From sequence record LR745206.1: DNA of 64,000 nt; one strand, given 5' to 3'. The position numbers were made by a program, and so were the translations under genes. Below the pieces are notes generated by a model. The model searched no databases and was not told the origin of the DNA. It saw only the letters and a program-made list of their open reading frames with translations. Shown here piece by piece: positions 1,003 through 50,338 of this stretch (position 1 is its first letter; each line of letters starts with the position of its first letter).

Positions 1003-1164
1003 ATGGATAATATAACTACACATAAAGACCCAACAGAAAACTACACACCAGTAGGTCAAACATTCTGTAAGGGTAAATGCGATACGAAAGCTATAAGAAC
1101 GAAAGAAGGTCTTGTTGTTCTTTGTGATGGATGTAAAAGGGTTGTTATTGATAATAGAGATTAG
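1003..1164 (+). CDS. small Cys-rich (zinc-finger-like) protein, 53 aa
   Basis: Hand-translated MDNITTH...FCKGKC...LCDGCKRVVIDNRD; below ORF-track cutoff. Confidence 0.65.
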   Translation: MDNITTHKDPTENYTPVGQTFCKGKCDTKAIRTKEGLVVLCDGCKRVVIDNRD

Positions 1165-1529
1165 TGGAATATTTACCAGGTATAATAGATGAAAGTCTTC
1201 AAAAATTAAATTATTTTGAAATATTAAATGATTTTAATGTACCATTGTACCCTAATAGATTCGATGATGATATTTCAAACAATGATATTACGGATTCAAT
1301 AGAATTTAAAGGTGGTGAAATATTAATTCTTAGATGGTTTAAACCAAAAACAACAAGAACACTTTATAGTTTTGTGGTTGGATATTATAAATCAGATAAG
1401 TACCATGAGGTTAAAAGAGAATGTCCTATGAGTATGGATTTTGTTTCTATCAATACTGCTATACTTAATAATATAACCAATTCATTTGTAAGAGAATTGA
1501 AGATAGATTCTATATTATATGGTTTGTAG
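1164..1529 (+). CDS. hypothetical protein with C-terminal RxxK motif
   Basis: Ends VRELKIDSILYGL. Confidence 0.65.
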   Translation: MEYLPGIIDESLQKLNYFEILNDFNVPLYPNRFDDDISNNDITDSIEFKGGEILILRWFKPKTTRTLYSFVVGYYKSDKYHEVKRECPMSMDFVSINTAILNNITNSFVRELKIDSILYGL

Positions 1530-1791
1530 ATGTAAGTTAAATTTTATGATGAAGGATTTTCACTTTATTGATGGTGAAATCTATGATTATGATTATGATA
1601 GTCATGAAGAAACTGGAATTTTGATTTTTTATATAAAAGGTAGAAGATTATCATTTTCAACAGGTCTTCCATTTGTTGATGGTAAGCTTCCGATGGTAGA
1701 AGATAAATTCCGGAAGTATTTCGATGATTTACAATATTTAAGAGAAGAAAAATTAAAACAATTATTTGATGATATTAGCGAAAACAGTTAA
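1519..1791 (+). CDS. hypothetical protein with C-terminal RxxK motif
   Basis: Ends LREEKLKQLFDDISENS. Confidence 0.6.
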   Translation: MVCRCKLNFMMKDFHFIDGEIYDYDYDSHEETGILIFYIKGRRLSFSTGLPFVDGKLPMVEDKFRKYFDDLQYLREEKLKQLFDDISENS

Positions 1792-2326
1792 ACAGATTAC
1801 ATTATTAAATGTAATCATATTTATATTAGCATATATGACGGATTTTTCATTCTATGATCAATTCGCACTTTTTCCTGGTGATGGTCAACCACACCAATAT
1901 ATAACACATATGTTTCTACATGCTGGATTCACACACATCTTATTTAATATGTTAGCTTTTCTGTCATTTGGATCAGATGTTGAGAATTACTTTGGTAGAA
2001 ATAAATTTATAGTATTTTATCTATTATCAGGAATTGGAGCAGCACTTTTACATATCGTATTAACGGGAAGTCAATCTCCTATGGTTGGTGCTTCCGGTGC
2101 TATATTTGGTGTATTAGCAGCATCTGCAATTATTCACCCAGAACAAAAATTTTATGTATTTTTCATATTACCAATAAAGGCTAAATGGATAATGCCAATA
2201 CTAATAACAATAGAATTATATCTAGGAATAGTGTATAGTGATGGGAACATAGCCCACTTTGCTCATATTGGAGGAGCAATAACTGGAACATTATTTCTAC
2301 TAATTAACAAATATTTAAAAAAATGA
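1766..2326 (+). CDS. rhomboid family intramembrane serine protease
   Basis: FLHAG-x-x-H-x-x-FNM, GASGAIFG catalytic Ser, AHFAHIGG catalytic His, multiple TM segments. Confidence 0.92.
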   Translation: MMILAKTVKQITLLNVIIFILAYMTDFSFYDQFALFPGDGQPHQYITHMFLHAGFTHILFNMLAFLSFGSDVENYFGRNKFIVFYLLSGIGAALLHIVLTGSQSPMVGASGAIFGVLAASAIIHPEQKFYVFFILPIKAKWIMPILITIELYLGIVYSDGNIAHFAHIGGAITGTLFLLINKYLKK

Positions 2327-2883
2327 AACATCTACTAATATTAGATTTGGATGAAGCTTTATGGCACTCTGTTTATAACAGTGAGGTTAGTAAAGAAAGT
2401 TATGATTTTATCAAGAATTCTTTTGATGTTCTTGGTATGTACAGAACTATGCTTCGACCACATCTACAAGAATTTCTTGATTATGCTTTTGAAAATTTTG
2501 ATGTTGCTATTTGGACAGCTGCTGGTAAGGGGTATGCTGAGTTTGTTCTAAATGAAATGAATCTAGATATCACAAAGTTAAAATTCTTTTACACAGAGAA
2601 GAATTGTACACCTAAATATGATTATGGTGAAGGTTGGGGTATGGGTCAAATGGTTTATAAAAAGAGTATCAGTAAGTTAAGTAAAAAGGGTTATGATATG
2701 GATAAAGTGTTGATGGTTGATGATAAACCAGAACACATTGATTCTTATGGGAATGTTATTAAAATAAAAGCTTTTTATGGTGATTCTGATGATACTGAAT
2801 TATTAAAATTGATAAAATATTTGGATAAAATAAAAGATGAACCAAACATTAGAAGTATCGAGAAAAGAGATTGGTCTAATTAA
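2323..2883 (+). CDS. HAD-superfamily NIF/FCP1-like phosphatase
   Basis: LILDLDE, RPHLQEFL, WTAA, MVDDKP motifs. Confidence 0.85.
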   Translation: MKHLLILDLDEALWHSVYNSEVSKESYDFIKNSFDVLGMYRTMLRPHLQEFLDYAFENFDVAIWTAAGKGYAEFVLNEMNLDITKLKFFYTEKNCTPKYDYGEGWGMGQMVYKKSISKLSKKGYDMDKVLMVDDKPEHIDSYGNVIKIKAFYGDSDDTELLKLIKYLDKIKDEPNIRSIEKRDWSN

Positions 2884-2893
2884 TACATATAAA

Positions 2894-3217
2894 ATGAAAA
2901 AAATATTAACAATATTATTGATGTTTTTGTCGAGTTTATTATACTCACAAACTGTTTGTACAGATACTATATTTGCTCCTAACGCCTTTACACCAACATT
3001 AACAACAAATAATAAATTTATACCTTATATAAATTATTATACTGACTATCAGATGGTTATCTATAATAGATGGGGTTATTTAATTTATAGTGGTAAAGAA
3101 TGGGATGGTACATATAAAGGTACTTTGTGCCAACAAACAACATATATCTGGGAAATAAAAGCTTATGGATCAGAATGTGAAAGAAATTTTAGAGGAATGG
3201 TTGTGTTGATTAGGTAA
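2894..3217 (+). CDS. signal peptide plus T9SS type-B (CHU_C / gliding-motility-associated) C-terminal domain
   Basis: MKKILTILLMFLSSLLYSQ then PNAFTP, IYNRWG, WDG, TYxW, FRGMVVLIR. Confidence 0.85.
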   Translation: MKKILTILLMFLSSLLYSQTVCTDTIFAPNAFTPTLTTNNKFIPYINYYTDYQMVIYNRWGYLIYSGKEWDGTYKGTLCQQTTYIWEIKAYGSECERNFRGMVVLIR

Positions 3218-3245: not shown

Positions 3246-3596
3246 ATGATGGCACCAGATAGAATTGAGTTATTTATTGATAAGAAGATACAAGGATTTT
3301 TGTTCGATGGAGAATCATATGATTTTGTCATTGATAATCTTAAAGAATGTATTGAAAGATTTAAGAATAAAGATACATTTATAAATGTAAGTAAGAGATA
3401 TCTCCTAAATAACTGGTCACAAATCGCTTTTAAAAAAAGATATACAGCTTATTATGTTATGTATTCAACTAAAAGATTACATGATATGGAATGGATTGTC
3501 AAAAGCACCAGTAAATTCCCAACATACCAAAGAAGTAAAATGTTTAGTCTTGTCCAATTAAAGGATAAGTTATCAGAACAAAAATCATCATGTTAG
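3246..3596 (+). CDS. hypothetical protein
   Basis: ORF preceded by TATATTTG 3234-3241. Confidence 0.65.
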   Translation: MMAPDRIELFIDKKIQGFLFDGESYDFVIDNLKECIERFKNKDTFINVSKRYLLNNWSQIAFKKRYTAYYVMYSTKRLHDMEWIVKSTSKFPTYQRSKMFSLVQLKDKLSEQKSSC

Positions 3597-4288
3597 AATT
3601 TTTTATAAGTTTACAAGTTGATGATGATTTCGGTGTTCCTCAAAATTCTTGGGGACCAATTTCTCCTTATATACCCAGTGGTTTGTTATGTATAATTGGT
3701 AATTTTGCGAAAGTAAATCCTGATATTTTTGATAGAAAAGATTTTTTTAAACCTATCGAATCCATAATTAGAAATAACATCAATATAAATGATTTATCAA
3801 AAAAAGATATTGAGAAAATAATGTCTAAATTTGGTGATTATGAAATGAATTCAGATGTTATGAAATTCAATCCTGATAACTATTATGATTTAGATCAAAT
3901 ATTTATTGATAAAAATAAAAATGATACTAGAATAAGTATTAGATATCTTAATTGCCCAATTAATTCATTTTACTTATTACAAGAAGGAAACGCACTAAAA
4001 GTTATAATAAGTCCATTCACACAAAACTATTATTCGATTACTGAAACAGAATGGTTAGAATTTCTAAACTATTTAAAAGAAAAAATTGGCATATCTGAAT
4101 TAAGAGATATTAAATTAAATCAAATTTTTGATGAAAAACCTAACAAATCCGTAAATTTAATAAGACAGCTTAGATTTAAGTTAAATAAAAGCTCTGATAG
4201 ATTTTTAAATAGTGTCTTAGATTTTTATGAAAAAAGAGGATATTTATCTGATAAACAATACAATTCTGTAGCTAAGAATATTTGGTAA
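3590..4288 (+). CDS. hypothetical protein
   Basis: Internal LRDIKLNQIF motif followed by a short tail FLNSVLDFYEKRGYLSDKQ. Confidence 0.65.
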   Translation: MLEFFISLQVDDDFGVPQNSWGPISPYIPSGLLCIIGNFAKVNPDIFDRKDFFKPIESIIRNNININDLSKKDIEKIMSKFGDYEMNSDVMKFNPDNYYDLDQIFIDKNKNDTRISIRYLNCPINSFYLLQEGNALKVIISPFTQNYYSITETEWLEFLNYLKEKIGISELRDIKLNQIFDEKPNKSVNLIRQLRFKLNKSSDRFLNSVLDFYEKRGYLSDKQYNSVAKNIW

Positions 4289-6301: not shown

Positions 6302-6508
6302 ATGAAGAAAGGTGATAAATTAATATGCACTAAAGAAGTTAATAATTTTTTAGGAAACACTCTATTTGAAAAGGATAAAGAATATGATGTTCTTTATGTT
6401 GATAATGAGGATATAGAAGTAATGGTTTGTTTAAATCATGTTTTATATGCTAATGAGTATAATTTATTTCCATTGGAATGGGTATTAAATAATTTCAAAA
6501 AAATATGA
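6302..6508 (+). CDS. hypothetical protein
   Basis: 68-aa ORF in operon. Confidence 0.6.
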   Translation: MKKGDKLICTKEVNNFLGNTLFEKDKEYDVLYVDNEDIEVMVCLNHVLYANEYNLFPLEWVLNNFKKI

Positions 6509-6912
6509 TAAAGGAAAAAATAGAAGAGGTTATTGAAAACCTAATAATAAATACCGAATTGGGAACACTAGTTTGGGAGGAAGGTGATACCAAAGATAGA
6601 AGATATGAGAGGTGTTTAATTTCTTATGGTGAGGATGGTACTCAGTTTGAGATAGAAATAAAATATACTTTAATTAATAACAAATGGAAATTTGATGATT
6701 CTAAGTATATTTGGGTACGTAATAAAAAACTACCAAAGGGACATTATTATGGATCGACCGATTCTGTTATGAAACTTAAAGAGATTTTACTAAAAAAATA
6801 TTGCCAAGATTTAAATCCAAGTGAGAGCGATGTTGCTGATATACTTGGTGAGATATCCAAGGGTATATCATTATCAACATATAGGGATAATAAACTAAAT
6901 AAAATTTTATGA
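6505..6912 (+). CDS. hypothetical protein with C-terminal RxxK motif
   Basis: Ends YRDNKLNKIL. Confidence 0.65.
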   Translation: MIKEKIEEVIENLIINTELGTLVWEEGDTKDRRYERCLISYGEDGTQFEIEIKYTLINNKWKFDDSKYIWVRNKKLPKGHYYGSTDSVMKLKEILLKKYCQDLNPSESDVADILGEISKGISLSTYRDNKLNKIL

Positions 6913-7550
6913 AAAATGCTTGGAAACTATTTGATTATGGTGAGACTCCAATCTATCTAAAATATTGGTTTTTAGGTCTTTTTCTATTCATACCAGTGAG
7001 CTTAGTATTGATGATATTTGTATCTATACTTATACATGAAATGGCTCATGTCCGTACAGCTAGAAAATTAGGATACAATACAGATTATATTTTTATAGAT
7101 ATATTACATGGTGGTGCTTTGGTAGATTCCAAACACGGTGATAACAACAAACACGCTATATCAGTAGCTTTAGCAGGTCCAACATCCAATTTGATATTAG
7201 CATTAATTATAACTTTAGGTACAACAATATTTACATCATTTAGTCCGGATAATATAGATTCACCAATAATTCCATTTTTAGCAGAATTTATCGGTATTAA
7301 TTTAATATTATTTATTGCTAATTTAATACCAATATACCCACTTGATGGTGGTAGGATAAGTAAAGCATTTTCAAAAATGTGTTTTGGTGAAAATAAAGGT
7401 AGAGTTATAAATGGTATAATCTCAATGATTTTATCTTTTTGTGTTTTGAGTTATGGTATAATAAAGGTTGATTTTATATGGATAATATTCTCAGTAATAT
7501 TTATTATAACATCATATGGTGAAATTAAATCAAAAAAAGATGAACTTTGA
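6909..7550 (+). CDS. M50 family site-2 intramembrane metalloprotease
   Basis: HEMAH, LAGP, NLIPIYPLDGGRI, TM helices. Confidence 0.92.
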   Translation: MKNAWKLFDYGETPIYLKYWFLGLFLFIPVSLVLMIFVSILIHEMAHVRTARKLGYNTDYIFIDILHGGALVDSKHGDNNKHAISVALAGPTSNLILALIITLGTTIFTSFSPDNIDSPIIPFLAEFIGINLILFIANLIPIYPLDGGRISKAFSKMCFGENKGRVINGIISMILSFCVLSYGIIKVDFIWIIFSVIFIITSYGEIKSKKDEL

Positions 7551-7950
7551 TAATTTAATAGATGATGTTATAGATTTAGGTAAAAAATATACTATAATAT
7601 CAGGATATTGTGATGTTATTAATCATGAAAGCCAACATCACAAGTGTATAAAAAAAATCGATAGTGATTCTTATTATACTATAATAGGATGTTTTGATGA
7701 TGAAATGATAGAAGAGTGTATTTCTGAATATGAAATAGATTTTGATGAAATAATAGAGGGTGAATATAATTTTTATGCTGTTTTTACTTATGATGGTGGG
7801 GATTATGATGAATATGGTAGATGTACTATGAGACCATACTTGGAAGTTGAGTACATAAGATGGGATTTTATTCAAACCTTTGAGGAAAGAGATAGAGAGT
7901 TTAAATTAAGCCAGATATTAGAATCTGATTTTGATATATTTAATATATGA
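7540..7950 (+). CDS. acidic hypothetical protein with RxxK motif
   Basis: Near C-terminus DREFKLSQILE. Confidence 0.6.
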   Translation: MNFDNLIDDVIDLGKKYTIISGYCDVINHESQHHKCIKKIDSDSYYTIIGCFDDEMIEECISEYEIDFDEIIEGEYNFYAVFTYDGGDYDEYGRCTMRPYLEVEYIRWDFIQTFEERDREFKLSQILESDFDIFNI

Positions 7951-8258
7951 GAGAAGCACTAATTATAGAAACAGGGGATATATTGGATATAAAATTTCAA
8001 TATAAAATGATGAATTTCAGATTCAGTCTTCCTGAGGGAATTGAGATAGATGATAATTCTTTATTAGAAAAGGAAACCTATGTAAGAACAGAACCAGGTA
8101 AACCTTTGAAACTTGAAGGTTCTTTGACAAAACCTGGAGAAGATGATGAAAAAAGAACTTATTATATATTATCGGACGGAAAAAAGTACTATGAAAATGA
8201 ACTTATCATAGGTTTGAATAATATAAGGGAATATAAGATAAAAAATATAATTGAATAA
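7947..8258 (+). CDS. hypothetical protein with RxxK motif
   Basis: Ends IREYKIKNIIE. Confidence 0.6.
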   Translation: MREALIIETGDILDIKFQYKMMNFRFSLPEGIEIDDNSLLEKETYVRTEPGKPLKLEGSLTKPGEDDEKRTYYILSDGKKYYENELIIGLNNIREYKIKNIIE

Positions 8259-8847
8259 TATGTTTATAATTGACACAAACAAAGAAGATGTATTGAATGA
8301 TTTTCCATTTATACAAGAATGGATAGATACATTACAATTGAACATCATTAAAAAAGAAATTGATGATTCAAAAATTGAATTTTACTACTCTTATGGATTT
8401 TTCGTACCAAAAGTGGATAATAAAGAAGATCTTTATAATGATATGTATGAGAAATGTTCTAAGATGTTATTTGATGATAGATTAACATTTGAGCTATCTA
8501 AAGTAAGAGTAAATCTTACCATGAAGATAGGAAAATTGATATTATCAAATAGATTAGATAAAGGTAATATACCATCTTTATTAAAAAAAATAGTTACTGA
8601 ATTAACTAAGGTTAAAATGACAGTTGAGGCTGAGTATCATGAAAACAAGGATGTAATTGACTCTATTCCGGAGATAGATACTAATATAGTATCATTTGAT
8701 GTTATCAGGGATGTTATATCCAGTGATTACTCAGAATCTCAAAATTTTGATATTGATTCTATTTTAGATAAAATTTCTAAAAAAGGTGTAGAGTCTTTAT
8801 CAGATGAAGAGAAAGAATTCTTGGATAAGAAAAGTAAAGACATTTAA
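8251..8847 (+). CDS. protein with DUF6576-like C-terminus
   Basis: Ends IDSILDKISKKGVESLSDEEKEFL. Confidence 0.65.
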   Translation: MNNMFIIDTNKEDVLNDFPFIQEWIDTLQLNIIKKEIDDSKIEFYYSYGFFVPKVDNKEDLYNDMYEKCSKMLFDDRLTFELSKVRVNLTMKIGKLILSNRLDKGNIPSLLKKIVTELTKVKMTVEAEYHENKDVIDSIPEIDTNIVSFDVIRDVISSDYSESQNFDIDSILDKISKKGVESLSDEEKEFLDKKSKDI

Positions 8848-9665
8848 TGTTAGATTTAAATAAAATATACCAAGGTGATTCATTACAATTATTAAAAGAT
8901 ATGCCGGACAACTCTGTTGATCTGGTAATAACCTCACCTCCATATGCTGATTTGAAAACATATATAGATTTCAAGGGAATATTAGCAGATGATTATGTGG
9001 AATGGTTTCTACCGTATTGTAATGAGATATGTCGAGTTATTAAACCAACTGGTTCATTTATTCTAAATATAAATGATAAGGTTGAAAATAGGTTCAGACA
9101 TCCTTATGTATTTGATTTAATATCTGAGTTACATAAAAGAACAGATCTTAAATTATTTGAGAGACTATTTTGGAATAAAATGAAAGGTTTACCAAATAGG
9201 TATAGATTTGGTGATAGAGTAGAGTATCTATTTTGGTTTGCTAAAGATAAAGAATTCTATTTTAATATAGATGAAATGAGAACCGAGTATGCTGAGAAAT
9301 CCATAAAAAGAATGAAGAAACCTTTGAAGAAGAGGTTTGCTAGAACTGATGGTGATGGTGAAGTAGATTATAAAGACTGGAACCCGAATCCAAAGGGTGC
9401 TTTACCAACCACACTTGTTAATATATCATCCGAGTCCAAAAGGATTGCTGATAATCATGTGGCTGTTTATCCAGTTGAGTTGGTTAAATACTTTATAAAA
9501 GGTTCTTCGAAAGAAGGAGATGTAATTCTAGATCCATTTATGGGTACTGGTACAACTGCTTTAGCAGCAAAGGAGTTGAATAGAAATTATATCGGATTTG
9601 AGCTACAACCTGATTATATAAAAGTTGCTAAGAAAAGAATAGATGATTATGTTAAGAATATCTAA
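8847..9665 (+). CDS. DNA methyltransferase, N4-C/N6-A beta class
   Basis: ITSPPY, HVAVYP, ILDPFMGTGTT. Confidence 0.92.
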   Translation: MLDLNKIYQGDSLQLLKDMPDNSVDLVITSPPYADLKTYIDFKGILADDYVEWFLPYCNEICRVIKPTGSFILNINDKVENRFRHPYVFDLISELHKRTDLKLFERLFWNKMKGLPNRYRFGDRVEYLFWFAKDKEFYFNIDEMRTEYAEKSIKRMKKPLKKRFARTDGDGEVDYKDWNPNPKGALPTTLVNISSESKRIADNHVAVYPVELVKYFIKGSSKEGDVILDPFMGTGTTALAAKELNRNYIGFELQPDYIKVAKKRIDDYVKNI

Positions 9666-9933
9666 GAATTTAAATAAAATAGTTTCAATAAAAAGATACT
9701 TATCTGAGGTTAATGAATCTGTTGATATAGACAGTTTTCTAATTATACCTGGTGTAACAATATACACTGGTATCTATCAAAGTAAGAATACACTTTGTTT
9801 CATGGAACAAACAGGGGATTCAGTATTGGTAGTTGAATTTCCATCAGAGGGAGATGTTGATAGATTTTTCACATTTATAATGAGGGATATTAAATTAAAT
9901 CAAATAATGAATTTAAATGACTCTAAAGAATAG
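9643..9933 (+). CDS. hypothetical protein with RxxK motif
   Basis: MRDIKLNQIM near C-terminus. Confidence 0.6.
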   Translation: MIMLRISKNLNKIVSIKRYLSEVNESVDIDSFLIIPGVTIYTGIYQSKNTLCFMEQTGDSVLVVEFPSEGDVDRFFTFIMRDIKLNQIMNLNDSKE

Positions 9934-9957: not shown

Positions 9958-10203
9958 TTGAAAGTTTATTGTAAGAGAACAGTTATAAATGAAAATAGTA
10001 ATAAAATTAGATGGAGTAGAGATAAGTATTATCAAACGAAAACTCCTGATGATTATGAATTAAATAATGGTGTTTATATGTATGTTATAGTGGAAGATCA
10101 TAAAAAATTATATTATCCATTATCAAAAAAAGATTTTGATAGATATTTTATTGGTATGGATGAAATTAGAAATAATAAATTAAATCAAATATTAAATGAT
10201 TGA
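9958..10203 (+). CDS. hypothetical protein with RxxK motif
   Basis: Ends IRNNKLNQILND. Confidence 0.6.
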   Translation: MKVYCKRTVINENSNKIRWSRDKYYQTKTPDDYELNNGVYMYVIVEDHKKLYYPLSKKDFDRYFIGMDEIRNNKLNQILND

Positions 10204-10936
10204 TTTTAACTTCCTAACGGATTTAGAAATATTGAAATGGAATGATAGATTATTTGGTAGTAAATACCAAGTAAAACCACATTATGGTAATAAAATGTCT
10301 TATCCAGAACTTTTGGTATTTAAAAAAGATTATAATGGTGGGTTATTAACCATACCAGATCCATCTATAAATTTTGATTTTATATTTTCTGTCAGTTCAA
10401 ATAGAACACAGAATTTTTTTGATATTTTAGATAAAATAATTAAAAAGGATTTTATCACTGAATTTACACATCATGTTGGTAATAACAAATATGAATCAAA
10501 TAATATTTTAATTACTGATGGTTTAGTAACATCTAAGAGTGAGGAAGAACACTATTTACTAAAAAGGAAATATATAAAATATACATATAAGTTCACTGGT
10601 AAATTATCATCCATAATGGCATATGTTTCATGTATAAGTGATAGTATAAATATATTTGAATTGATTTGGGGATATGATGAGAAAGGTAATGAGCATTGCT
10701 TACTCGACTATCCAATTGGTACTATTGTATCTATTGAGAAGGATAAGTCCAAGGACTATTTAGTATTGGAGTATAAATATGAAAAATCCACAAATAATGA
10801 ATTTATTATAAAATATATCTGTTCTGAAATGTTAAACACCGATTCTTGTATTATACAATACAGTGATACGAAGATATATAAAAGTGATGAATTGTGTTAT
10901 AGTAGAAACAATCGAATTGATGATATCTTAAATTAA
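10196..10936 (+). CDS. hypothetical protein with RxxK-like motif
   Basis: Ends SRNNRIDDILN. Confidence 0.65.
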   Translation: MIDFNFLTDLEILKWNDRLFGSKYQVKPHYGNKMSYPELLVFKKDYNGGLLTIPDPSINFDFIFSVSSNRTQNFFDILDKIIKKDFITEFTHHVGNNKYESNNILITDGLVTSKSEEEHYLLKRKYIKYTYKFTGKLSSIMAYVSCISDSINIFELIWGYDEKGNEHCLLDYPIGTIVSIEKDKSKDYLVLEYKYEKSTNNEFIIKYICSEMLNTDSCIIQYSDTKIYKSDELCYSRNNRIDDILN

Positions 10937-10937: not shown

Positions 10938-11312
10938 ATGGATTATAAGGAATTTGTATATAAAAACAATAAACCATATATATTGGACTTCTCCACAAAG
11001 AGTTGTGTTAGAGAGGTTCTTATAGAAGAAAGACTTGAACAACTTCTATCACTATTTAAGGATAAAGATATTGTTACTGGAAAAGAAATAGTTAATAATT
11101 TAAAATTATCTGATGATGATAGATATATCAATGGTCATGGTGATAACCCGGAATATGTTAAATGTTTTTTTAAGCATTTCTTACATGAAAATAAAGTGTT
11201 AGTAACAAACCCTGGTCAAGATTTAGCATCATCAGTTTTGATTATTAATCATTATGGGTTAACAAAAGAGTATCAAAGAGAATTAAAACTATCAAGAATA
11301 TTGGATAATTAA
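10938..11312 (+). CDS. hypothetical protein with RxxK motif
   Basis: Ends QRELKLSRILDN. Confidence 0.6.
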   Translation: MDYKEFVYKNNKPYILDFSTKSCVREVLIEERLEQLLSLFKDKDIVTGKEIVNNLKLSDDDRYINGHGDNPEYVKCFFKHFLHENKVLVTNPGQDLASSVLIINHYGLTKEYQRELKLSRILDN

Positions 11313-11330: not shown

Positions 11331-11339
11331 TAAAAATAT

Positions 11340-11420
11340 GCGGGTGGTTCCTAATCAGTACAGGTGTGCTGGGTGGCTTCTAACCCCACTGGATTTGGGG
11401 TTCGACTCCTCTCACCCGCA
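11340..11420 (+). tRNA. atypical tRNA-like element, probably tRNA-Arg(TCT)-derived
   Basis: Acceptor GCGGGTG/CACCCGC, T-arm GGGG-TTCGACT-CCTC, loop CTTCTAA; irregular D region and anticodon stem; no encoded CCA. Confidence 0.6.
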
Positions 11421-11622
11421 CAAATTGGAAAAGGCAAACTATATAGGATACGACTTCATGTTTGATGTTTATTATCTTTGGGATAAAGGATCAAGATTGG
11501 GTGTTAAACGGAATCCACATTACACCGATAATAATGGGTGGATGTCAAGTAGGGTATGGGAGACTGATAGAAGTTATGGTCAATTCCAAACAATATTAAA
11601 TGTTTTACATATAAAATTGAAG

Positions 11623-11910
11623 ATGAAAGGAAAATGGAATGGTCAAACCAAGACCGAATTTGATAAAAACTCAAGACGAGTAAAAGATATCGTTGATAAA
11701 AGCGCTGGTGATAAAGATAAGGCTATCGCTTTAGCAACAACACAATCCAATAGAATAACAGATGAGTGGAAAGCTATCAATAGAGCTATGGCTGCTAAAG
11801 AAGCAAACCAAGAACATATCTTCGAGGTATTCTTCCAAAGAGCATATGAGTTAGGATCTGTATCAAAACAAGATTATCGTAATTATAAACTTGAAAAGTT
11901 AGGGATATGA
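11623..11910 (+). CDS. hypothetical protein with RxxK motif
   Basis: Likely start MKGKW within ORF 11338..11910; ends YRNYKLEKLGI. Confidence 0.6.
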   Translation: MKGKWNGQTKTEFDKNSRRVKDIVDKSAGDKDKAIALATTQSNRITDEWKAINRAMAAKEANQEHIFEVFFQRAYELGSVSKQDYRNYKLEKLGI

Positions 11911-12218: not shown

Positions 12219-12536
12219 ATGGGTAAAATAATCAAAACAAAATTTTATTGCAAAGGTACAAGTAAGACAGCTCCGAGAGGATCTAGTTTTGATAATTTAC
12301 AATGGAGTGATAGATTTATCGAAGGTAAATGGTATGATGGTGTTTATGAACTTTGGTATGATGATGAAGAAAGAAATAAAGAATCATATAGGTTAAATAA
12401 TCGATGGAGGAAATATCTAGTAATTAATGAAAGTGGTATTGAAGAAGAAATTTCAAAACCAATGATGAACGCTATATTCGAAATGGATAAAGATGAAATG
12501 AGAAATATAAAAATAGAACAAATACTTAAAAAATAA
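12219..12536 (+). CDS. hypothetical protein with RxxK motif
   Basis: Ends MRNIKIEQILKK. Confidence 0.6.
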   Translation: MGKIIKTKFYCKGTSKTAPRGSSFDNLQWSDRFIEGKWYDGVYELWYDDEERNKESYRLNNRWRKYLVINESGIEEEISKPMMNAIFEMDKDEMRNIKIEQILKK

Positions 12537-15202: not shown

Positions 15203-15256
15203 TTAAGTTTAATAGAATAATATTACGTATATTTGTAAAAATAATAAATAGTTAAA

Positions 15257-18197: not shown

Positions 18198-18198
18198 T

Positions 18199-26724: not shown

Positions 26725-26737
26725 CAAAATTGAAAAA

Positions 26738-31360: not shown

Positions 31361-31588
31361 ATGAGATACAAATCAGGAGACGTTGTGATTAAAACCACTG
31401 GTGGTAATAAAATGTCAATATTTGATGTTGTTAGTGAGGGAGTTTATAAATGTATTTGGTGTGTTGGTAGTAGAATGAATGAATCCCTATTTAAAGAAGA
31501 TGAAATAATACCAATTTCTGAGTATAGAATTGTTGAAGAAAGGCAGTATAAGATTGATGAATTATTGAAAAATTCTAAGGATGAATAA
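31361..31588 (+). CDS. DUF2158-like small protein with RxxK motif
   Basis: KSGDVV..KTTGGNKM..CIW; ends ERQYKIDELLKN. Confidence 0.55.
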   Translation: MRYKSGDVVIKTTGGNKMSIFDVVSEGVYKCIWCVGSRMNESLFKEDEIIPISEYRIVEERQYKIDELLKNSKDE

Positions 31589-41899: not shown

Positions 41900-42943
41900 A
41901 TGAAAACAATTTTAGTAACCGGAGGAGCTGGATATATTGGATCACATACAGTTGTGGAATTATTAGAAAAGAATTATGATGTTATCATAGTTGATAATTT
42001 TTCAAACTCCAATCCCATAATGATGAATAAATTACATCAACTAACCGGCAAATCAGTAAAGATATACACAAAAGATTGTCGAGAACAATTGGATGATATA
42101 CTTTCACATTATAAGATAGATGGTGTTATACACTTTGCGGCATATAAATCTGTCGGGGAATCTGTCGAGATACCTATTAATTATTATGACAATAACATCA
42201 ATTCACTTTTAAATATAATTGACGCTTGTAAAACATTCGATATAAAAAATATTGTATTTTCTTCTTCTTGTTCATTATATGGTAATGTTGATTCTTCCTC
42301 ATATAAATTTCCTGGTCAGATATTTGGACCAGTAAATGAGGATACTCCACTATCAGATCCACAATCACCATATGCCTTTACTAAATTGGTTGGTGAGAGA
42401 ATATTATCAGACTTTTGTAAAGTTAATAAAGATATAAATGGAATATCATTGAGATATTTTAACCCAGTTGGTGCTCACGAAAGTGGGTTGATTGGTGAGC
42501 TTCCACTAGATAAACCAAATAATATTATGCCTGTGTTGTGTAATTCTGTTGATGATGAAGAAATGATGGTCTTCGGTGAAGATTATGAGACTCGTGATGG
42601 ATCTTGTATAAGAGATTATGTACACGTTTCTGATATTGCATCAGCTCATGTCTTAGCACTTGAGTATATGATGAGTGGTCCGGATAAGAATTATGATGTT
42701 TTTAATTTGGGATCTGAATCAGGTGTTTCTGTTTTAGAATTAATAAAAACATTCGAAGAAGTTAATAATGTTAAAGTTAATTATAAAATAAGTGGTAGAA
42801 GAGAAGGAGATGTTGTTCAAATATATTCTGATTCAACAAAAGCCAAAAGCCTATTAGGGTGGGAACCTAAGTATGATATAAAAGATATGGTATCGAGTGC
42901 TTGGAAATGGCACAATAACAACAAAACTACTAATGTTATTTAA
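41900..42943 (+). CDS. galE: UDP-glucose 4-epimerase
   Basis: TGGAGYIGSHT, HFAAYKSVGES, YAFTK, LRYFNPVGAH, RDYVHV. Confidence 0.95.
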   Translation: MKTILVTGGAGYIGSHTVVELLEKNYDVIIVDNFSNSNPIMMNKLHQLTGKSVKIYTKDCREQLDDILSHYKIDGVIHFAAYKSVGESVEIPINYYDNNINSLLNIIDACKTFDIKNIVFSSSCSLYGNVDSSSYKFPGQIFGPVNEDTPLSDPQSPYAFTKLVGERILSDFCKVNKDINGISLRYFNPVGAHESGLIGELPLDKPNNIMPVLCNSVDDEEMMVFGEDYETRDGSCIRDYVHVSDIASAHVLALEYMMSGPDKNYDVFNLGSESGVSVLELIKTFEEVNNVKVNYKISGRREGDVVQIYSDSTKAKSLLGWEPKYDIKDMVSSAWKWHNNNKTTNVI

Positions 42944-43172
42944 TGAATTTGAATTAAAAGAAACTGATGAATGGTATAAAGATGACTTAATTATATACCG
43001 TGGATTAGGACAAGATAGTAATGATGACTTTGTTATTGAATTATATACACTTTGTGGTATTAATGATGTTGGGTTATCTGATAAAATTATATTTAGAGGT
43101 GAATATAATGAAATGGTTAACTTTATAAAAACCGAGTATAGAGATGATCAATTAATTAAGTTGTTAAACTAA
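42897..43172 (+). CDS. hypothetical protein with RxxK-like motif
   Basis: Ends YRDDQLIKLLN; true start probably downstream. Confidence 0.5.
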   Translation: MLGNGTITTKLLMLFNEFELKETDEWYKDDLIIYRGLGQDSNDDFVIELYTLCGINDVGLSDKIIFRGEYNEMVNFIKTEYRDDQLIKLLN

Positions 43173-44502: not shown

Positions 44503-45075
44503 ATGTCAAAGAGTAGAGAGGATATTAAGAGTTATATACGAGATTTAAATCTAAGTCTCATTATGAATGATCATAAAGTTGATACTGATATCTCAAAGAG
44601 AAAAGATAAATACCAATTTATGAAAAAAAATTATAAATTGATTAAGTATATAACTAAATCTGGTGGGGTATTAACTGGATCTAGAGCAATACGTTGTTAT
44701 TCGGTAGATGGGAAACAATTACTTGATAGACATTCAAAAGATTGGGATTTTATAATAACAAGAGAAATGGCTTTCAAGATATGTGAACACTTTGGTATGA
44801 AATATGATCTATCCAATTTCATTAGTGTTAAGAAACAAAGATGGACAGTTCATCCATCATATAGTGATTCTTATAGAATTGGTGCTGTTGATGTACAAAT
44901 GATGGTTAAGGATAAATTACCGGATTACAAAGAAATTGATGGTGTTAGAATATCAGATTTAACATATACATTGGCTCAAAAAACAAAAATGTTATTTGAT
45001 GCTAATGATTCCGATCAATTTGAAAAACACCAAGATGATTTATTACAAATAATAACAAAATTTAATAGTTTATGA
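44503..45075 (+). CDS. Pol-beta-superfamily nucleotidyltransferase-like protein
   Basis: LTGSRAI...KDWDFII, later VDV. Confidence 0.6.
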   Translation: MSKSREDIKSYIRDLNLSLIMNDHKVDTDISKRKDKYQFMKKNYKLIKYITKSGGVLTGSRAIRCYSVDGKQLLDRHSKDWDFIITREMAFKICEHFGMKYDLSNFISVKKQRWTVHPSYSDSYRIGAVDVQMMVKDKLPDYKEIDGVRISDLTYTLAQKTKMLFDANDSDQFEKHQDDLLQIITKFNSL

Positions 45076-45626: not shown

Positions 45627-45867
45627 AACAGAAATACCAAGAGGTAAATTCGGAGAGTTTTCAAAGATTCGTGAAGAGTTTTTAGAAGCTGAGGATGCAA
45701 TTGAACAAGATAATAAAGTTATGTTACTTGTTGAATTATCAGATCTAATTGGTGCTATTGAGGGGTATTGTGAAAATAAACATAATATCACATTAAAAGA
45801 TTTATTAATAATGAAAGAAGCCACTAAAGGTGCATTTAATGATGGAACAAGAAGTCCTAGATCTTAA
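45613..45867 (+). CDS. small MazG-like protein
   Basis: KIREEFLEAEDA...VELSDLIGAI. Confidence 0.65.
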   Translation: MGYHKTEIPRGKFGEFSKIREEFLEAEDAIEQDNKVMLLVELSDLIGAIEGYCENKHNITLKDLLIMKEATKGAFNDGTRSPRS

Positions 45868-46258
45868 AATAAAATATTTTGACGAGGATAGATTAAAAAA
45901 AGATTTATCTGTGAAAAATAAAATACCTTATTGGCCATCACCTTATGATAGAAGTTGGGGAGCATATTTCACATCAAAGTTAGTTGAACGTGTTCTAATA
46001 ATAGACACAATTTATATAGATGGTAATCTATTCTATATTTTAGATGATGATATACTTTGGTTTGAAGCTATACCGACCTATAAGAATGGTGAATTTGAAT
46101 GGGTGCGTTCCGAGTACTCAAGTTTATACTCAATAAAGGATATGTTAAGAAGAGATAAATCATTTGGTTTAGAAGATCCATTTTATACTAAAAATGAATA
46201 TGAAAATCTTTTCATTATGTTAAATAGAAACGATAAATTAAAACAAATATTATCATGA
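45830..46258 (+). CDS. hypothetical protein with RxxK motif
   Basis: Ends NRNDKLKQILS. Confidence 0.55.
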   Translation: MHLMMEQEVLDLKIKYFDEDRLKKDLSVKNKIPYWPSPYDRSWGAYFTSKLVERVLIIDTIYIDGNLFYILDDDILWFEAIPTYKNGEFEWVRSEYSSLYSIKDMLRRDKSFGLEDPFYTKNEYENLFIMLNRNDKLKQILS

Positions 46259-47142
46259 AGATATTAGACGGTAAATTAGTAGCCAATGAGTTACTTAATG
46301 GTGTTAAAGAGAAAATAGATTATCACATAAGAAGCAAACATTTAGGTTATGAATTTACTAGACCAAGTATGGCTATTGTTATGGTTGGTAATAATCCAGC
46401 TAGTGAATCGTATATAAAAGGTAAGATAAAGGCTTGTGAGAAAGCTGGTATAAACCATAATCTAATTAGATTTGATGAATCAATATCCGGATATGATCTA
46501 TTTAATGAAGTTAGAAAACTTAACAAGTCTCATTTCGATGGATTTATAGTTCAACTACCATTACCATCACATATAGATGCTGATGGTATAATAAACGAGA
46601 TAAGTTCGGATAAAGATATTGATGGATTTCATCCACTAAATTTTGGTAAAATGGCACTTGGTCAAAAGGCTATGAGACCAGCAACACCATATGGTATTCT
46701 AAAACTATTACAACATTATCAAGTTGAAACAAGAGGTAAGCATGTTGTGGTTATAGGTCGGTCAAATATAGTCGGTAAACCTATTTCTATTATGTTAGGT
46801 AATGACTTTGATATTGGGCGAGCTACTGTTACCTCTTGTGATATAAACACACCCAAATCTCTCCTAATTGAAGAAACGAAGAAAGCTGATATTATAATTG
46901 TTGCTGTTGGTAAACCAAATTTATTAACATCTGATATGGTTAAAGAAGGTGTAGTTGTTATTGATGTTGGTATTAATAAACTGGAATCAGGTAAGTTAGT
47001 TGGGGATGTTGATTTCGAAAATGTTTCAAAGAAGTGTAGTTGGATATCTCCTGTTCCAGGTGGGGTTGGTCCAATGACTATTGCTGGGTTAATATTGAAT
47101 ACTTATGAAGCCTGGAAGACTAAAAACTTTATACATGAATAA
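46255..47142 (+). CDS. folD: methylene-THF dehydrogenase/cyclohydrolase
   Basis: VQLPLP, KDIDGFHP, PATPYG, GRSNIVGKP, PVPGGVGPMT. Confidence 0.95.
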   Translation: MKILDGKLVANELLNGVKEKIDYHIRSKHLGYEFTRPSMAIVMVGNNPASESYIKGKIKACEKAGINHNLIRFDESISGYDLFNEVRKLNKSHFDGFIVQLPLPSHIDADGIINEISSDKDIDGFHPLNFGKMALGQKAMRPATPYGILKLLQHYQVETRGKHVVVIGRSNIVGKPISIMLGNDFDIGRATVTSCDINTPKSLLIEETKKADIIIVAVGKPNLLTSDMVKEGVVVIDVGINKLESGKLVGDVDFENVSKKCSWISPVPGGVGPMTIAGLILNTYEAWKTKNFIHE

Positions 47143-47371
47143 ATGGGTTTGTAATACTAAAAATTTCGGACACTTCACCTATGGTAAAACATATGAAGGT
47201 GAGGTGTTTGGATCCTTACTTGATGTTAAAGATGATATAGGTCAGAATCCTATGCCATGTTTATATGGTACTGAATTGAGTATATCAACTATACCAACTA
47301 AAAGGATATATTACTTTATAACATTGGAGGAGTGGCGTGATAAACAATTAACTGAGATAATAAATGAATGA
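47135..47371 (+). CDS. hypothetical protein with RxxK motif
   Basis: Ends WRDKQLTEIINE. Confidence 0.55.
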   Translation: MNKWVCNTKNFGHFTYGKTYEGEVFGSLLDVKDDIGQNPMPCLYGTELSISTIPTKRIYYFITLEEWRDKQLTEIINE

Positions 47372-47672
47372 TCAAAATAAAAAAAATCAAAAAGTATTTT
47401 TTGATTTTCTATTAGAGACGCCAGAGATACTTAATCAGAGTTATGTTTCTATTGATTTAAGACCAAGTCTTGATAAGGGAAAAGGATTTGCTCCAAATGA
47501 TACACAAGCTCAATTAGATCTAATAAAAGAATGTCCTGATATATTTTCCTATATAAGAAGTGGATATATTATAGAAATTAGAGAAACAAGATATCTAACT
47601 ATACTCGTTGATGAATGGACATCAATTAAAAGGGATATTAAAATCTATCAATTAATAAATGATATAAAATAA
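47364..47672 (+). CDS. hypothetical protein with RxxK motif
   Basis: Ends KRDIKIYQLIND. Confidence 0.6.
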   Translation: MNDQNKKNQKVFFDFLLETPEILNQSYVSIDLRPSLDKGKGFAPNDTQAQLDLIKECPDIFSYIRSGYIIEIRETRYLTILVDEWTSIKRDIKIYQLINDIK

Positions 47673-47673: not shown

Positions 47674-48372
47674 ATGTGGTTTAAGAAGAAAAATATAGAA
47701 AATAAAGAAAAATCTATAAGAGAGTTAAAAGAGAGACAAATTCAAGATACTTTACTTGGTTTTGCTTTAGAGGCTTATCAAAATAAGAATTTTTCTGTTG
47801 CTTTCAAAAGTGACTATGATAGAGAATCTATGGAGTTCATACCAAACCTTGTAGATGTTGGTAGGTATCATGATAAAGATAATACAAATCATGAACAAAT
47901 AATACTCAAACATTTAGAAAATGGACCTCTTGTAGTAATACATAAGAATCAATCAATATCTTGGGATTGGGGTAGTGGTGCGTATAAAACTGGTGGTCTT
48001 AACTTCAAAATTTATACAAGAAATGATGAAGGACACATTTTAGTTTATAGTTATAATAATGTATCATATGGTAGAAATTATTCCAACACTATGAATAAAT
48101 TTACCCTGTATAACAGGATATATGATGGATCACATTATGATAAACAATATGAAGTAGATTATGCTTTTGATAGAAGATGGAGTGATAAGAATATTGAAGT
48201 TGAAATAAACCGAATGAAGAATCTTGAAAAAATTGTTGAACTTATGGTTGATGAACAAACTATTGACCAAGAGGCTAGAAATTTAGATAGAATGGATAAG
48301 TTATTGGGTGTTATACCTAAACAAAGTAAGAGAGATAGAATATTAAAAGAGTTATTAAATGATCAGAAATAG
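47674..48372 (+). CDS. hypothetical protein with RxxK-like motif
   Basis: Ends KRDRILKELLND. Confidence 0.65.
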   Translation: MWFKKKNIENKEKSIRELKERQIQDTLLGFALEAYQNKNFSVAFKSDYDRESMEFIPNLVDVGRYHDKDNTNHEQIILKHLENGPLVVIHKNQSISWDWGSGAYKTGGLNFKIYTRNDEGHILVYSYNNVSYGRNYSNTMNKFTLYNRIYDGSHYDKQYEVDYAFDRRWSDKNIEVEINRMKNLEKIVELMVDEQTIDQEARNLDRMDKLLGVIPKQSKRDRILKELLNDQK

Positions 48373-48392
48373 AAAATTAAAAATGATATTAA

Positions 48393-48716
48393 ATGAAGTA
48401 TAAATTTAAATTTGAAATAGATTACTCAGGTATGAGTAAGGAAGATATGAGAGATGCTAAACTAAGTATATTAGATTCTGATGTTGAAATGATGGAATCA
48501 GAAGTTGATCCACAAATAAAATTACCTATACCAGAAGTTGGTAGTATTATATTGGTTGGTAATGAAGATTACGAAGTAACCAATATGAAATATAAAATAG
48601 ATGAAGATTACACCATTATATTTTGTCTTACATCAGTTAAAGTTAAAAAGGAAAGAAAAACAAAAAATAATAATGCTAAGTTAAGTAGAATGTCATCAAT
48701 GTTATCATCAATATAA
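48393..48716 (+). CDS. hypothetical protein
   Basis: 107-aa ORF. Confidence 0.6.
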   Translation: MKYKFKFEIDYSGMSKEDMRDAKLSILDSDVEMMESEVDPQIKLPIPEVGSIILVGNEDYEVTNMKYKIDEDYTIIFCLTSVKVKKERKTKNNNAKLSRMSSMLSSI

Positions 48717-48723
48717 AAAGTAT

Positions 48724-49086
48724 ATGAATACAAATACAAGATCTTACTTACATGGTTATGAGATATATTGGGATGAGGATAAATCACAATGGTTTTATGT
48801 TGATTCTGGTGAACCAGCAAATGATGTTCCTGTGGAATTAAAAAAGAGACCTTGTCCAAGTTGTAGAGAAATTATGCCAGAATCCGGACAAGATGCTTGT
48901 ATTCAGAATTTACCAAATACTAAATACGCTTGTTGTGGACATGGATTAAAATCTGATGATATTGGTTTCGAACAAGCATATATTATGTTGGATGATGATA
49001 CTATACATAGATTTGATACAACAGAAGAATTTTACAAATGGTTAGAAGATAACCTAAATTATAAAGCAAATAATAAACATATATGA
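48724..49086 (+). CDS. Cys-containing small protein
   Basis: RPCPSC...DACIQNLP...ACCGHG. Confidence 0.65.
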   Translation: MNTNTRSYLHGYEIYWDEDKSQWFYVDSGEPANDVPVELKKRPCPSCREIMPESGQDACIQNLPNTKYACCGHGLKSDDIGFEQAYIMLDDDTIHRFDTTEEFYKWLEDNLNYKANNKHI

Positions 49087-50075
49087 GTATAAATGAATTT
49101 ATAAAAGATTTATCAATTAAAGATAAGAAAAACCTAGCTGGTAAGTTTACTAAGTTAATAGAAGAGACTGGTGAATTAGCTAGAGTTATTCTACCATTTG
49201 AATCGGCGCCTGGGACTAACCATAGATTCACAGATAAAGAATCTATTTTAGAAGAAATTGTTGATGTTCACCTATGTAATATGTCTATTGCTTATTCATT
49301 GGGATTTACAGAAGAAGAGTTTAATGAGATGCTGGTTAAGAAATCTAAGAAATGGTCTCAACTACAATCCAATGAGGAACAAGCACAATTCCCATTGCCA
49401 TTTGAAATACACATAACTATTGATGCTAGTGGTGTTATGGATAGATGGGAAAGACATGAGTATGATTTTGAGATAGAAGATTTTAGAGAAGTTTGTAAAG
49501 AAGTAGGAGTAAAGCCAATTGTTTTAGATTTAGAGATAAATGGTGAAAATCCAATTAAAGATGTTATGACAAGCTCAAAACATTTCGGTGATAACAGAAC
49601 TGCTTATGAAGAATCTGAAAGAATTGCTGATGGATTGATTGCTTGTGGTTATAAAGTATTGAGAAAAAAAATAGAAACGGTTCCTTGGCATCCAGCAGCA
49701 CCAGTAATATCAAATGGTTATAAAATTCCAAATGATTGCTATTTCGAAAGTCATATAGGAGTTGTTATATCACCTGATCAAAAAAAGGATTTGGATTATT
49801 TTGTTCAGAATACATTAACTGATGGTCACTTAATTGAATTATGGGGCACAGCTAAATTATCACAAAACTTTTTCAAGAAATCTAAAGATGGTAGTAAGTA
49901 TGTTAATATACTAACTTATCGGTGTGATATGATAGGTAAACCAACATTTATTTCACAAGTAGAAGCAATAAAATATTTATTGAATCAGGAAGGATTTGAA
50001 TATGAAAAGGTTGAAGTTGAATATGCTATCTATGATACAAATGTAAGTCATGATTCAAAATGGATAACTGGATAA
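49083..50075 (+). CDS. MazG-like domain fused to an uncharacterised domain
   Basis: KLIEETGELA...EEIVDV; then FEIHIT and YFESHI segments. Confidence 0.7.
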   Translation: MSINEFIKDLSIKDKKNLAGKFTKLIEETGELARVILPFESAPGTNHRFTDKESILEEIVDVHLCNMSIAYSLGFTEEEFNEMLVKKSKKWSQLQSNEEQAQFPLPFEIHITIDASGVMDRWERHEYDFEIEDFREVCKEVGVKPIVLDLEINGENPIKDVMTSSKHFGDNRTAYEESERIADGLIACGYKVLRKKIETVPWHPAAPVISNGYKIPNDCYFESHIGVVISPDQKKDLDYFVQNTLTDGHLIELWGTAKLSQNFFKKSKDGSKYVNILTYRCDMIGKPTFISQVEAIKYLLNQEGFEYEKVEVEYAIYDTNVSHDSKWITG

Positions 50076-50083
50076 TAACAAAT

Positions 50084-50338
50084 ATGATAAAGAATGGTGT
50101 TATTGCTTATAATATAGGTGATGAGGTTGTTCTATTGAGAAGAAAGAAGAGTGGGTATCCAAGAGCGATAAAAGATGATGAGGTTTATATTATACAAAAT
50201 ATAGAAAATGATCAAGTAATAGTATCACAACACTCTTCTGATGGTGTTGGTTGGATAAACCCAATAAAAGTACATAAAACATATCTAATAAACAAATCAA
50301 AACTAAGAGATATTAAAATAAACTCAATACTTAAATAA
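50084..50338 (+). CDS. hypothetical protein with RxxK motif
   Basis: Ends LRDIKINSILK. Confidence 0.6.
   Translation: MIKNGVIAYNIGDEVVLLRRKKSGYPRAIKDDEVYIIQNIENDQVIVSQHSSDGVGWINPIKVHKTYLINKSKLRDIKINSILK

Follow-up and report, generated by a model that had tools for sequence, protein, structure and literature searches.

A portable C-terminal peptide on unrelated small proteins in a lineage of huge phages

The motif at gene ends

The stretch of DNA analysed here (the window; 64,000 nucleotides, ~29% GC) corresponds to approximately positions 496,001-560,000 of LR745206.1, an unannotated 634,780-bp huge phage assembly ('uncultured phage'), which together with its very large phage relatives belongs to a set described previously (PMC7162821). 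Six-frame translation reveals the motif R-x-x-K-[LI]-x-x-[ILV]-[LIMF] at the ends of many open reading frames (ORFs) on the plus strand, with 0-9 residues between the motif and the stop codon. Among 112 greedy, non-overlapping ORFs of the window, the strict pattern, R..K[LI]..[ILV][ILMF] within the last 20 amino acids (aa), occurs 16 times, against 0.055 expected from residue shuffling (at most 2 in 2000 shuffles). Elsewhere in the window proteins it occurs 3 times in ~18,300 body positions, which gives a 62-fold ratio of tail to body rates. A relaxed pattern, scored separately, is present in 21 window ORFs, or 24 once three degenerate tails are added.

The first two copies are RELKIDSIL (1491-1517), 3 aa short of the stop of ORF 1164-1529 (121 aa), and REEKLKQLF (1741-1767), 7 aa short of that of ORF 1519-1791 (90 aa). 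RDNKLNKIL (6883-6909) forms the final residues of ORF 6505-6912 (135 aa). It is followed by REFKLSQIL (7894-7920; 9 aa short of the stop of ORF 7516-7950), REYKIKNII (8226-8252; 1 aa short, ORF 7947-8258), RDIKLNQIM (9883-9909; 7 aa short, ORF 9643-9933) and RNNKLNQIL (10168-10194; 2 aa short, ORF 9958-10203). In ORF 10196-10936 position 4 is R (RNNRIDDIL, 10904-10930, 1 aa short), and the orthologs have RNSRIDDILN. RELKLSRIL (11277-11303) lies 2 aa short of the stop of ORF 10938-11312. ORF 11338-11910 ends in a '...LGI' variant, RNYKLEKLGI (11878-11907), which reads REYKLEKLGI in an ortholog. RNIKIEQIL (12501-12527) is 2 aa short of the end of ORF 12219-12536, as is the variant RDAKIDIIN (12915-12941) in ORF 12540-12950, whose orthologs have RDAKINIINE. 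The largest carrier, ORF 13007-15202 (731 aa), bears RDLKLEKIL (15170-15196) 1 aa before its stop.

Further along the window, RHFKLNKLL (29428-29454) ends ORF 29104-29460, RDRKIDEVL (31296-31322) ends ORF 30984-31328, and RQYKIDELL (31541-31567) is 6 aa short of the stop of ORF 31361-31588. Position 4 is Q in RDDQLIKLL (43140-43166), at the end of ORF 42897-43172, and in RDKQLTEII (47336-47362), at the end of ORF 47105-47371. RNDKLKQIL (46226-46252) ends ORF 45830-46258, RDIKIYQLI (47631-47657) lies 4 aa short of the stop of ORF 47364-47672, and RDIKINSIL (50306-50332) ends ORF 50060-50338. The three degenerate tails are RRDLIINGLI in ORF 124-534, RQKKINLFL in ORF 25561-25791, and RDRILKELL (48331-48357) near the end of ORF 47674-48372, where position 4 is I, as in the tail type of the related phage LR756504.1.

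A sequence-only reading of the window had placed this motif at the C-termini of about 27 proteins with dissimilar bodies, and had noted its absence from recognisable enzymes (FolD, Prs and GalE). The listed C-termini are confirmed, all on the plus strand; they had been located by ORF starts, some of which are alternative (7540, 11623, 50084). The figure of about 27 is fair, because the 21 relaxed and 3 degenerate tails, together with a single internal copy and a degenerate one at an N-terminus, sum close to it. Comparison by blastp finds no similarity between the bodies of the window carriers, as had been claimed. The motif is absent not only from the three enzymes named but also from the Dam and N6/N4 methylases, the rhomboid protease, the CCA/polyA nucleotidyltransferase and the DUF2201 metallopeptidase/VWA protein. 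Copies away from the C-terminus had been proposed in two places. One is present: RDIKLNQIF (4103-4129, aa 172-180 of 232) in ORF 3590-4288, whose part upstream of the motif is similar to the 81-aa protein of ORF 9958-10203. The other, near the N-terminus of the nucleotidyltransferase of ORF 44503-45075, is only degenerate: RDLNLSLIM (44539-44565) at aa 13-21, following KSYI (KSYIRDLNLSLIM), and its significance is uncertain.

Scanning of the whole of LR745206.1 in 50-kb pieces, with mechanical ORF calling, gave 93 strict and 112 relaxed tails among 998 ORFs (~11%), on both strands and all along the genome, although few fall within the structural region (150-225 kb). The tail is found on 20% of ORFs of 60-150 aa and on one of the ~210 ORFs longer than 250 aa. 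All 112 copies lie within 11 residues of the C-terminus, and 74 of them end no more than 2 residues after the motif. In the sequence logo, a hydrophobic residue at -9, K (or I/L) at -4, S/Q at -3, a hydrophobic residue or E at -2 and I/L at -1 precede a core of R1, D/E/N2, x, K4, I/L5, N/D/K/E6, x, I/L/V8, L/I/F9 and D/K/N10, with few aromatics and no conserved Q. The tag can thus be written as a consensus of ~14 residues, Phi..K-[S/Q]-x-Phi-R-[D/E/N]-x-K-[I/L]-[N/D/K/E]-x-[I/L/V]-[L/I/F]-[D/K/N], followed by 0-9 residues; KSEIRDEKIDKILN is an example of 14-20 residues. To our knowledge, a tag shared by ~11% of a phage proteome has not been reported, and full-text literature searches returned no published description of the motif.

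Without their tails, the 112 carriers (41 to 731 aa) fall into 111 clusters in all-against-all blastp and phmmer comparisons, and only one pair is still similar. Searches of carriers against Pfam and PHROG (20 plus 10 proteins) gave no family match, and a profile search of the PDB with the tails gave noise only. Compared with size-matched ORFs, the bodies are more acidic (p = 6e-4), and a transmembrane-like segment is present in 3 of the 112. The genes are clustered, with 27 adjacent pairs against 12.5 expected.

These bodies might in principle derive from one ancient paralogous family that has diverged beyond recognition, with the tail as the part of a shared fold that has changed most slowly. 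Expanded paralog families are indeed known from huge phages, visibly related small genes with a variant tail stand in arrays in LR756504, and one pair of tagged bodies is still similar. Against this stand the 111 clusters, on which the idea was rejected, the wide range of lengths, and the predicted structures, which are alpha+beta for the 135-aa protein and multi-domain with a coiled coil for the 731-aa protein. The tag also occurs internally and N-terminally, and even with a common origin a retained tail would still call for a function. Hidden paralogy is accordingly given almost no credence.

Protein-level conservation and distribution among phages

Codon usage at R1, K4 and I/L5 of the 112 carriers equals that of the genome. 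Per-nucleotide information amounts to 1-2.6 bits at codon positions 1 and 2 and to 0.1-0.6 bit at third positions, and per-position information shows no conserved motif after the stop codons of the carriers. Conservation therefore acts at the level of the protein, not of the DNA. Together with the 111 clusters of bodies, codon usage and the distribution of information over codon positions support the earlier view of a portable, protein-level tag on unrelated bodies.

The sequence-only reading had offered a short DNA homology module for gene shuffling as an alternative, and a regulatory signal at gene ends, with the peptide as a by-product, would be a related possibility. One observation points in this direction: I8 is encoded by ATA in 82% of cases (52% in the genome) and L9 by TTA in 71% (51% in the genome), and neither gene-end position nor I-L context accounts for this bias. 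It may reflect weak nucleotide constraint or recent common descent of the 3' half of the tag. The genome-like codons at R1, K4 and I/L5, the low third-position information and the lack of conservation past the stop all oppose a DNA-level element. In addition, reading frame and distance to the stop are fixed, and a relative whose GC content is 42% has kept the motif, as have orthologs that share 27-57% identity. The shuffling module is contradicted by these data, and an element acting in the DNA appears extremely improbable. A translational-coupling signal for the next gene was rejected as well, since the gene following the carrier at 31361-31588 is convergent and the downstream sequence is unconserved.

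The sequence-only reading had also proposed that the motif be compared with a null of AT-rich codons. This null is rejected by residue shuffles and by other genomes. No tails were found in 100 kb each of PTm1, Lak-A1 (genetic codes 11 and 15) and LR756500 (24-31% GC), and 142 kb of the 735-kb phage LR756501 contain one borderline relaxed match, RAMKLKGLI. Since these four AT-rich huge phages are nearly tail-free and a relative with 42% GC keeps the tails, the tails are not an artefact of composition.

The relationships of these phages were judged from a UvsW-like helicase. Its nearest counterpart is in LR756502.1 (642 kb, 79% identity), followed by LR756504.1 (636 kb, 51%), the 735-kb phage LR756501/3 (44%), LR756500 (462 kb, 37%), and the Lak phages of Prevotella and Tenacibaculum phage PTm1 (~30%). 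LR756502 has 14 tails among the 115 ORFs of its first 50 kb. In LR756504 a variant tail, E-[YH]-R-K-x-[IK]-I-x-x-L-[LI], is found on many small genes. Positions 1-50000 of LR756504.1 contain 153 ORFs, 117 of them of 60-150 aa, with small-gene arrays that carry the tail FWTLAEYRKLIIEDLI or a similar one and are apparently expanded paralog families.

Two orthologous families illustrate how closely the tail is kept. For the 135-aa product of ORF 6505-6912, 24 full-length homologs were retrieved (45-93% identity, mostly 45-52%). Its most conserved stretch, GISLSTYRDNKLNKIL, is nearly invariant, and R-D-N-K-x-N-K-I-L is invariant. Many of these orthologs have a GVFGLGK extension past the motif, the only ortholog family in which it is found. 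The search with the 731-aa protein of ORF 13007-15202 yielded more than 1000 homologous clusters (54-69% identity). Residues R722 and K728 never vary among the 58 sequences aligned, and all 12 inspected sequences either end in the motif or have it ahead of an added domain of ~100 aa. This family usually measures ~590 aa, and the copy in the window (13007-16741, with the gene downstream) has an extra N-terminal domain of ~140 aa. At three relative loci the homolog is followed by the DUF2201 metallopeptidase/VWA gene, directly or past one small ORF.

Syntenic loci on metagenome contigs of 215 kb and 481 kb carry the tail in 8-13 of ~30 ORFs, including orthologs of window carriers. Over ortholog pairs, identity is 63% in the motif and 43% in the body, and the pattern is kept in essentially all true orthologs; apparent losses are either the '...K-L-x-x-L-G-I' variant or false pairings. 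IMG/VR was scanned twice with degenerate-DNA patterns, which yielded 8 and then 24 loci. Further tails and LR745206 homologs accompany the match at all 8 loci of the first scan and at ~20 of the 24 of the second. One relative (IMGVR_UViG_3300020576_007607, 69 kb, loci L043 and L053) has 42% GC, against ~29% for the lineage, and keeps both the tails and the LR745206 homologs. A pattern scan of 185,579 species genomes matched one contig, binned into a Bacteroidetes metagenome-assembled genome (MAG). From the controls and the IMG/VR and species-genome scans, it follows that the motif belongs to a single, widespread lineage of phages and does not depend on base composition.

The host is probably a member of the Bacteroidota, as suggested by the single MAG contig and by a promoter-like element. 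The sequences TATATTTG and ATATTTGT are 4.5-fold enriched upstream of genes over the whole of LR745206.1 and match the Bacteroidota-type -7 consensus TAnnTTTG.

The UvsW-like helicase itself (LR745206.1 120830-122440) contains an internal copy of the motif, within a 14-residue insertion, NLDEMRDKKIDHILNG, that separates helicase motifs. Only LR745206 and LR756502 have this insertion, which has already degenerated in LR756502, and therefore internal copies may not all be functional. Internal copies in core enzymes were dropped as independent support for this reason.

Structure, expression class and possible destinations

An AlphaFold2 model of the 135-aa protein, built with its ortholog alignment, comprises a helix, a beta-sheet and a helix over residues 1-120 at a predicted local distance difference test score (pLDDT) of 73-93. 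A long C-terminal helix follows, in which pLDDT drops to 50-55 over the motif. Foldseek found no match to this model at E < 0.1. The model of the 731-aa protein, multi-domain with a coiled coil, has a mean pLDDT of 52 (C-terminal domain 79-87, tail helix 57) and is too poor for a fold search. An invariant sequence with low packing confidence would fit a docking peptide, and the motif is apparently unpacked in these models.

The tail had been described as amphipathic. With a hydrophobic moment of 0.21-0.32 it does not exceed control C-termini (0.26), and it is not classically amphipathic because R1 and K4 share a side with I5, I8 and L9. This bears on whether the tail could be a membrane-targeting helix of the MinD/FtsA type. 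It is C-terminal and bears basic and aliphatic residues, and a subclass RKxKIxxIF, some members of which end in GG, superficially resembles MinD tails. With a hydrophobic moment no higher than in control tails, R1 and K4 inside the hydrophobic arc, few aromatics and a strict conservation of R1, D2 and K4 that is unexpected for lipid binding, a membrane target is very unlikely. Alternatively, the helices could bind each other as a self-association 'sticker', producing dimers or a mixed network or condensate with no separate hub. A heptad-like hydrophobic pattern (-9, -5/-6, -1/-2, 5, 8/9) extends over ~19 residues with conserved charges, and no extra receptor gene would be required. The conserved core, however, spans two helical turns only, and the basic R1 and K4 on the hydrophobic face would be repulsive in a parallel homodimer, so that self-association is considered quite improbable.

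An unbiased 8-mer search of upstream regions identified the element TTTAATATATA, which is 10-fold enriched and precedes 180 genes. It ends 4-5 nt upstream of the ATG in 81 genes and ~20 nt upstream in 77, and the former spacing suggests leaderless transcripts. The genes downstream of it include the portal, the terminase, a prohead protease-scaffold fusion and the baseplate operon. In the window it precedes nine non-carrier genes, at 23973, 32544 and 60968 on the plus strand and 971, 32186, 54117, 56474, 59290 and 60972 on the minus strand. Among carriers, 3 of 112 have it upstream, compared with 58 of 358 size-matched ORFs (Fisher p = 7e-5) and 16-30% in other classes, and 83% of carriers have no such element upstream within their gene run, compared with 55% of other genes. 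TTTAATATATA is probably a late or middle promoter of the lineage. Because they are depleted for it, the carriers would belong to an expression class different from that of the head genes, and probably an earlier one. The claim that they are accessory proteins is in keeping with these features: they are small, clustered, poor in the promoter-like element of head genes, and thus non-late in appearance.

The expression data are relevant to a possible role as a capsid-targeting signal, in which the tag would bind the scaffold or the inner surface of the capsid so that ~100 small effectors are packaged and injected with the DNA. A precedent is the capsid targeting sequence (CTS) of T4, a portable 10-residue tag common to sequence-divergent internal proteins (PMC9026906), of which the present tag would be a C-terminal analogue. 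LR745206.1 encodes a T4-type prohead protease fused to a scaffold-like region (198546-200669), with 13 tandem acidic repeats of 14 aa (NIAYSEYLAENLDK) followed by a very acidic linker, beside a gp23-like capsid gene. Pairing between these acidic repeats and the basic R/K side of the tag is conceivable. The sizes of the carriers (many of ~100 aa, one of 731 aa) recall T4 IPI, IPII, IPIII and Alt, and small acidic proteins fit anti-defence effectors. On the other hand, the carriers largely lack the TTTAATATATA element of the portal, terminase and protease-scaffold genes and avoid the structural region, and the tag is C-terminal rather than N-terminal. No T4-type [LIVM]-x-E site is enriched beside the tag: [LIVM]xE ends at position -2 in 7 of the 112 carriers and is elsewhere at background (1.9% per position), with no consistent site. 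The protease-scaffold fusion is also found in the 735-kb, 636-kb and, in degenerate form, 462-kb phages, and its acidic repeats are present in the motif-less 735-kb phage too. The repeats were accordingly rejected as a lineage-specific receptor, being present in both the motif-less 735-kb and 462-kb phages. Capsid targeting thus seems doubtful.

A degron or adaptor-binding tag would deliver early proteins to a protease or tether them there as adaptors, and would thereby time the removal of these proteins or of the targets bound to them. The tag lies near the C-terminus of small proteins that appear to form one class in timing and function. The phage has several peptidases, and the DUF2201 metallopeptidase/VWA gene lies directly downstream of the tagged 731-aa protein in conserved synteny. 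C-terminal degrons of the ssrA type require a defined free end. In the tag the last residues are polar and variable (D/K/N/E or none past L9, rather than defined non-polar residues), 0-9 aa separate the motif from the end, and in some orthologs functional-looking copies have 7-100 residues past them. Such variation in the final residues and in the length of sequence past the motif sits poorly with a classical C-terminal degron, and we regard a role of this kind as unlikely.

A docking peptide and its known counterparts

We favour, with some confidence, a reading of the tag as a short linear motif (SLiM), a portable peptide specific to the lineage that would dock or target its carriers to one common partner. 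It shares four features with this class, which is further defined by the binding of a partner domain: it is short, portable, more conserved than its surroundings and apparently located outside the folded domain. In the proposed mechanism, the tag would form a short helix jutting from the ends of unrelated small, acidic, soluble accessory proteins, in a clade of huge freshwater phages that probably infect Bacteroidota. The conserved face, R1 and K4 with I5, I8 and L9, would dock into one putative receptor, either a phage protein of the lineage or a host protein. Shared docking would give all tagged proteins one localisation or fate, and the variable body would provide each with its own activity. 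Of the sequence-only interpretation as a whole, the portable protein-level tag, its absence from recognisable enzymes and the accessory look of its carriers stand, and the 'amphipathic' character and DNA shuffling do not.

Several points weigh against docking to a common partner. No receptor emerged from the analysis, and both partner binding and a single hub are inferred. With mechanical ORF calling, some small ORFs are possibly not genes. The low pLDDT of the terminal helix is a weak sign of exposure, and the model of the 731-aa protein is poor overall. The UvsW-like helicase carries its copy in an insertion that is confined to the lineage and already decayed in the nearest relative, and selection on the protein does not by itself account for the codon preferences at I8 and L9. 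The role of TTTAATATATA as a mark of late genes is judged from the genes downstream of it.

Portable targeting peptides are themselves known, and the motif matches none of the T4 CTS, encapsulin, type IV or PRANC signals in sequence, position or context. The T4 CTS of IPI, IPII and IPIII is likewise a short portable peptide on divergent proteins, thought to address varied cargo to one place (PMC9026906). That signal, however, consists of 10 residues at the N-terminus with a gp21 cleavage site after them and is confined to a handful of head proteins, whereas the tag described here is C-terminal, has no enriched cleavage site and no link to the head-gene promoter element, and occurs on ~112 carriers. 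Encapsulin cargo-loading peptides and the coat-binding helix of P22-type scaffolding proteins are short C-terminal peptides or helices that dock cargo inside an HK97-fold shell, and in the P22 scaffolding helix two basic residues three apart are critical. Their sequences are dissimilar to the tag, which shares the C-terminal position of encapsulin peptides but has neither their G/S/L-rich consensus nor their proximity to the shell gene; their cargo genes usually adjoin that gene, whereas the tag genes are scattered over 635 kb.

Type IV effector signals (Dot/Icm, VirB/D4) and the PRANC/F-box tails of poxvirus ankyrin proteins also combine unrelated or variable bodies with a short C-terminal signal for one machine or hub, the bodies conferring specificity and the tails a shared fate. 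They belong to other organisms and machines and are far more degenerate, and neither homology nor a secretion apparatus is implied here. Beta-clamp/PIP-box and SSB-tail motifs are terminal hydrophobic-plus-polar motifs of 5-10 residues that bring many proteins to one hub, but their consensus (QL[SD]LF or Qxx[LIM]xx[FY][FY]) is unmatched by the tag, and they sit on DNA enzymes, whereas in this phage most enzymes of the polymerase, helicase and repair types are untagged. The E-Phi-R...Phi..Phi-Phi pattern and the '...LGI' ending of some tails recall the helices of HeH/SAP/Rho_N domains, but the register is one residue off and the Pfam models match no tagged protein (20 tested, E <= 0.1).

Sorting tags of the GlyGly-CTERM/rhombosortase, PEP-CTERM and type IX secretion C-terminal domain types, which pair a signal peptide with either a transmembrane helix at the C-terminus or a C-terminal domain of 80 aa, do not resemble the motif either, which consists of 9-14 polar or aliphatic residues on proteins of which 3 in 112 have a transmembrane-like segment. 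A rhomboid gene lies at window positions 1766-2326, with no link to the tag seen. A second recurrent C-terminal motif, ...ILDKISKKGVESLSDEEKEFLDKKSKD, is found at 8758-8847 of the window, the end of ORF 8251-8847, and at LR745206.1 175134-175496, on ORFs that are otherwise different. Similar tails accompany rhomboid proteins in Bacteroidota.

Beyond docking as such, we tentatively suggest, as a possibility only, a form of proteome-scale addressing: a C-terminal code of ~14 residues may route ~100 unrelated effectors (~11% of genes) to a single machine or compartment built by the phage, and may co-evolve with its receptor between sister lineages (RDxKIxxIL and RKxIIxxLL). The destination could be the giant capsid, from which the effectors would be co-injected, a compartment for replication or for the exclusion of defences, or a protease hub for the targeted removal of host proteins. 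Such a system would be a phage counterpart of effector translocation signals or of F-box/PRANC logic.

Most genes of huge phages are small ORFans without an experimental handle, and a tag shared by ~11% of the proteome supplies one. Used as bait, the tag peptide could identify a receptor that organises a hundred proteins. The tag also defines a functional class of 'dark' genes that have no homology, and is a ready-made portable label for delivering cargo to its binding partner. It would mean that a private code for sorting or docking can arise within a phage lineage and come to mark unrelated genes, and it raises the question of whether such tags come from genes born beside one, from capture of a tag or from convergence. 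With the capsid as receptor, the injected effector arsenal would be unusually large; with a host hub, the tag would mark a central vulnerability of the host, which is probably a member of the Bacteroidota.

Two further features of the window may be recorded. A tRNA-Met (CAT) gene is located at 26651-26725. Three tandem paralogs at 17451-19843 (248, 309 and 242 aa; 26-31% identity), which end in ...NTMYKA, ...INKLYRH and ...INRFFKD, are kept in the relatives.

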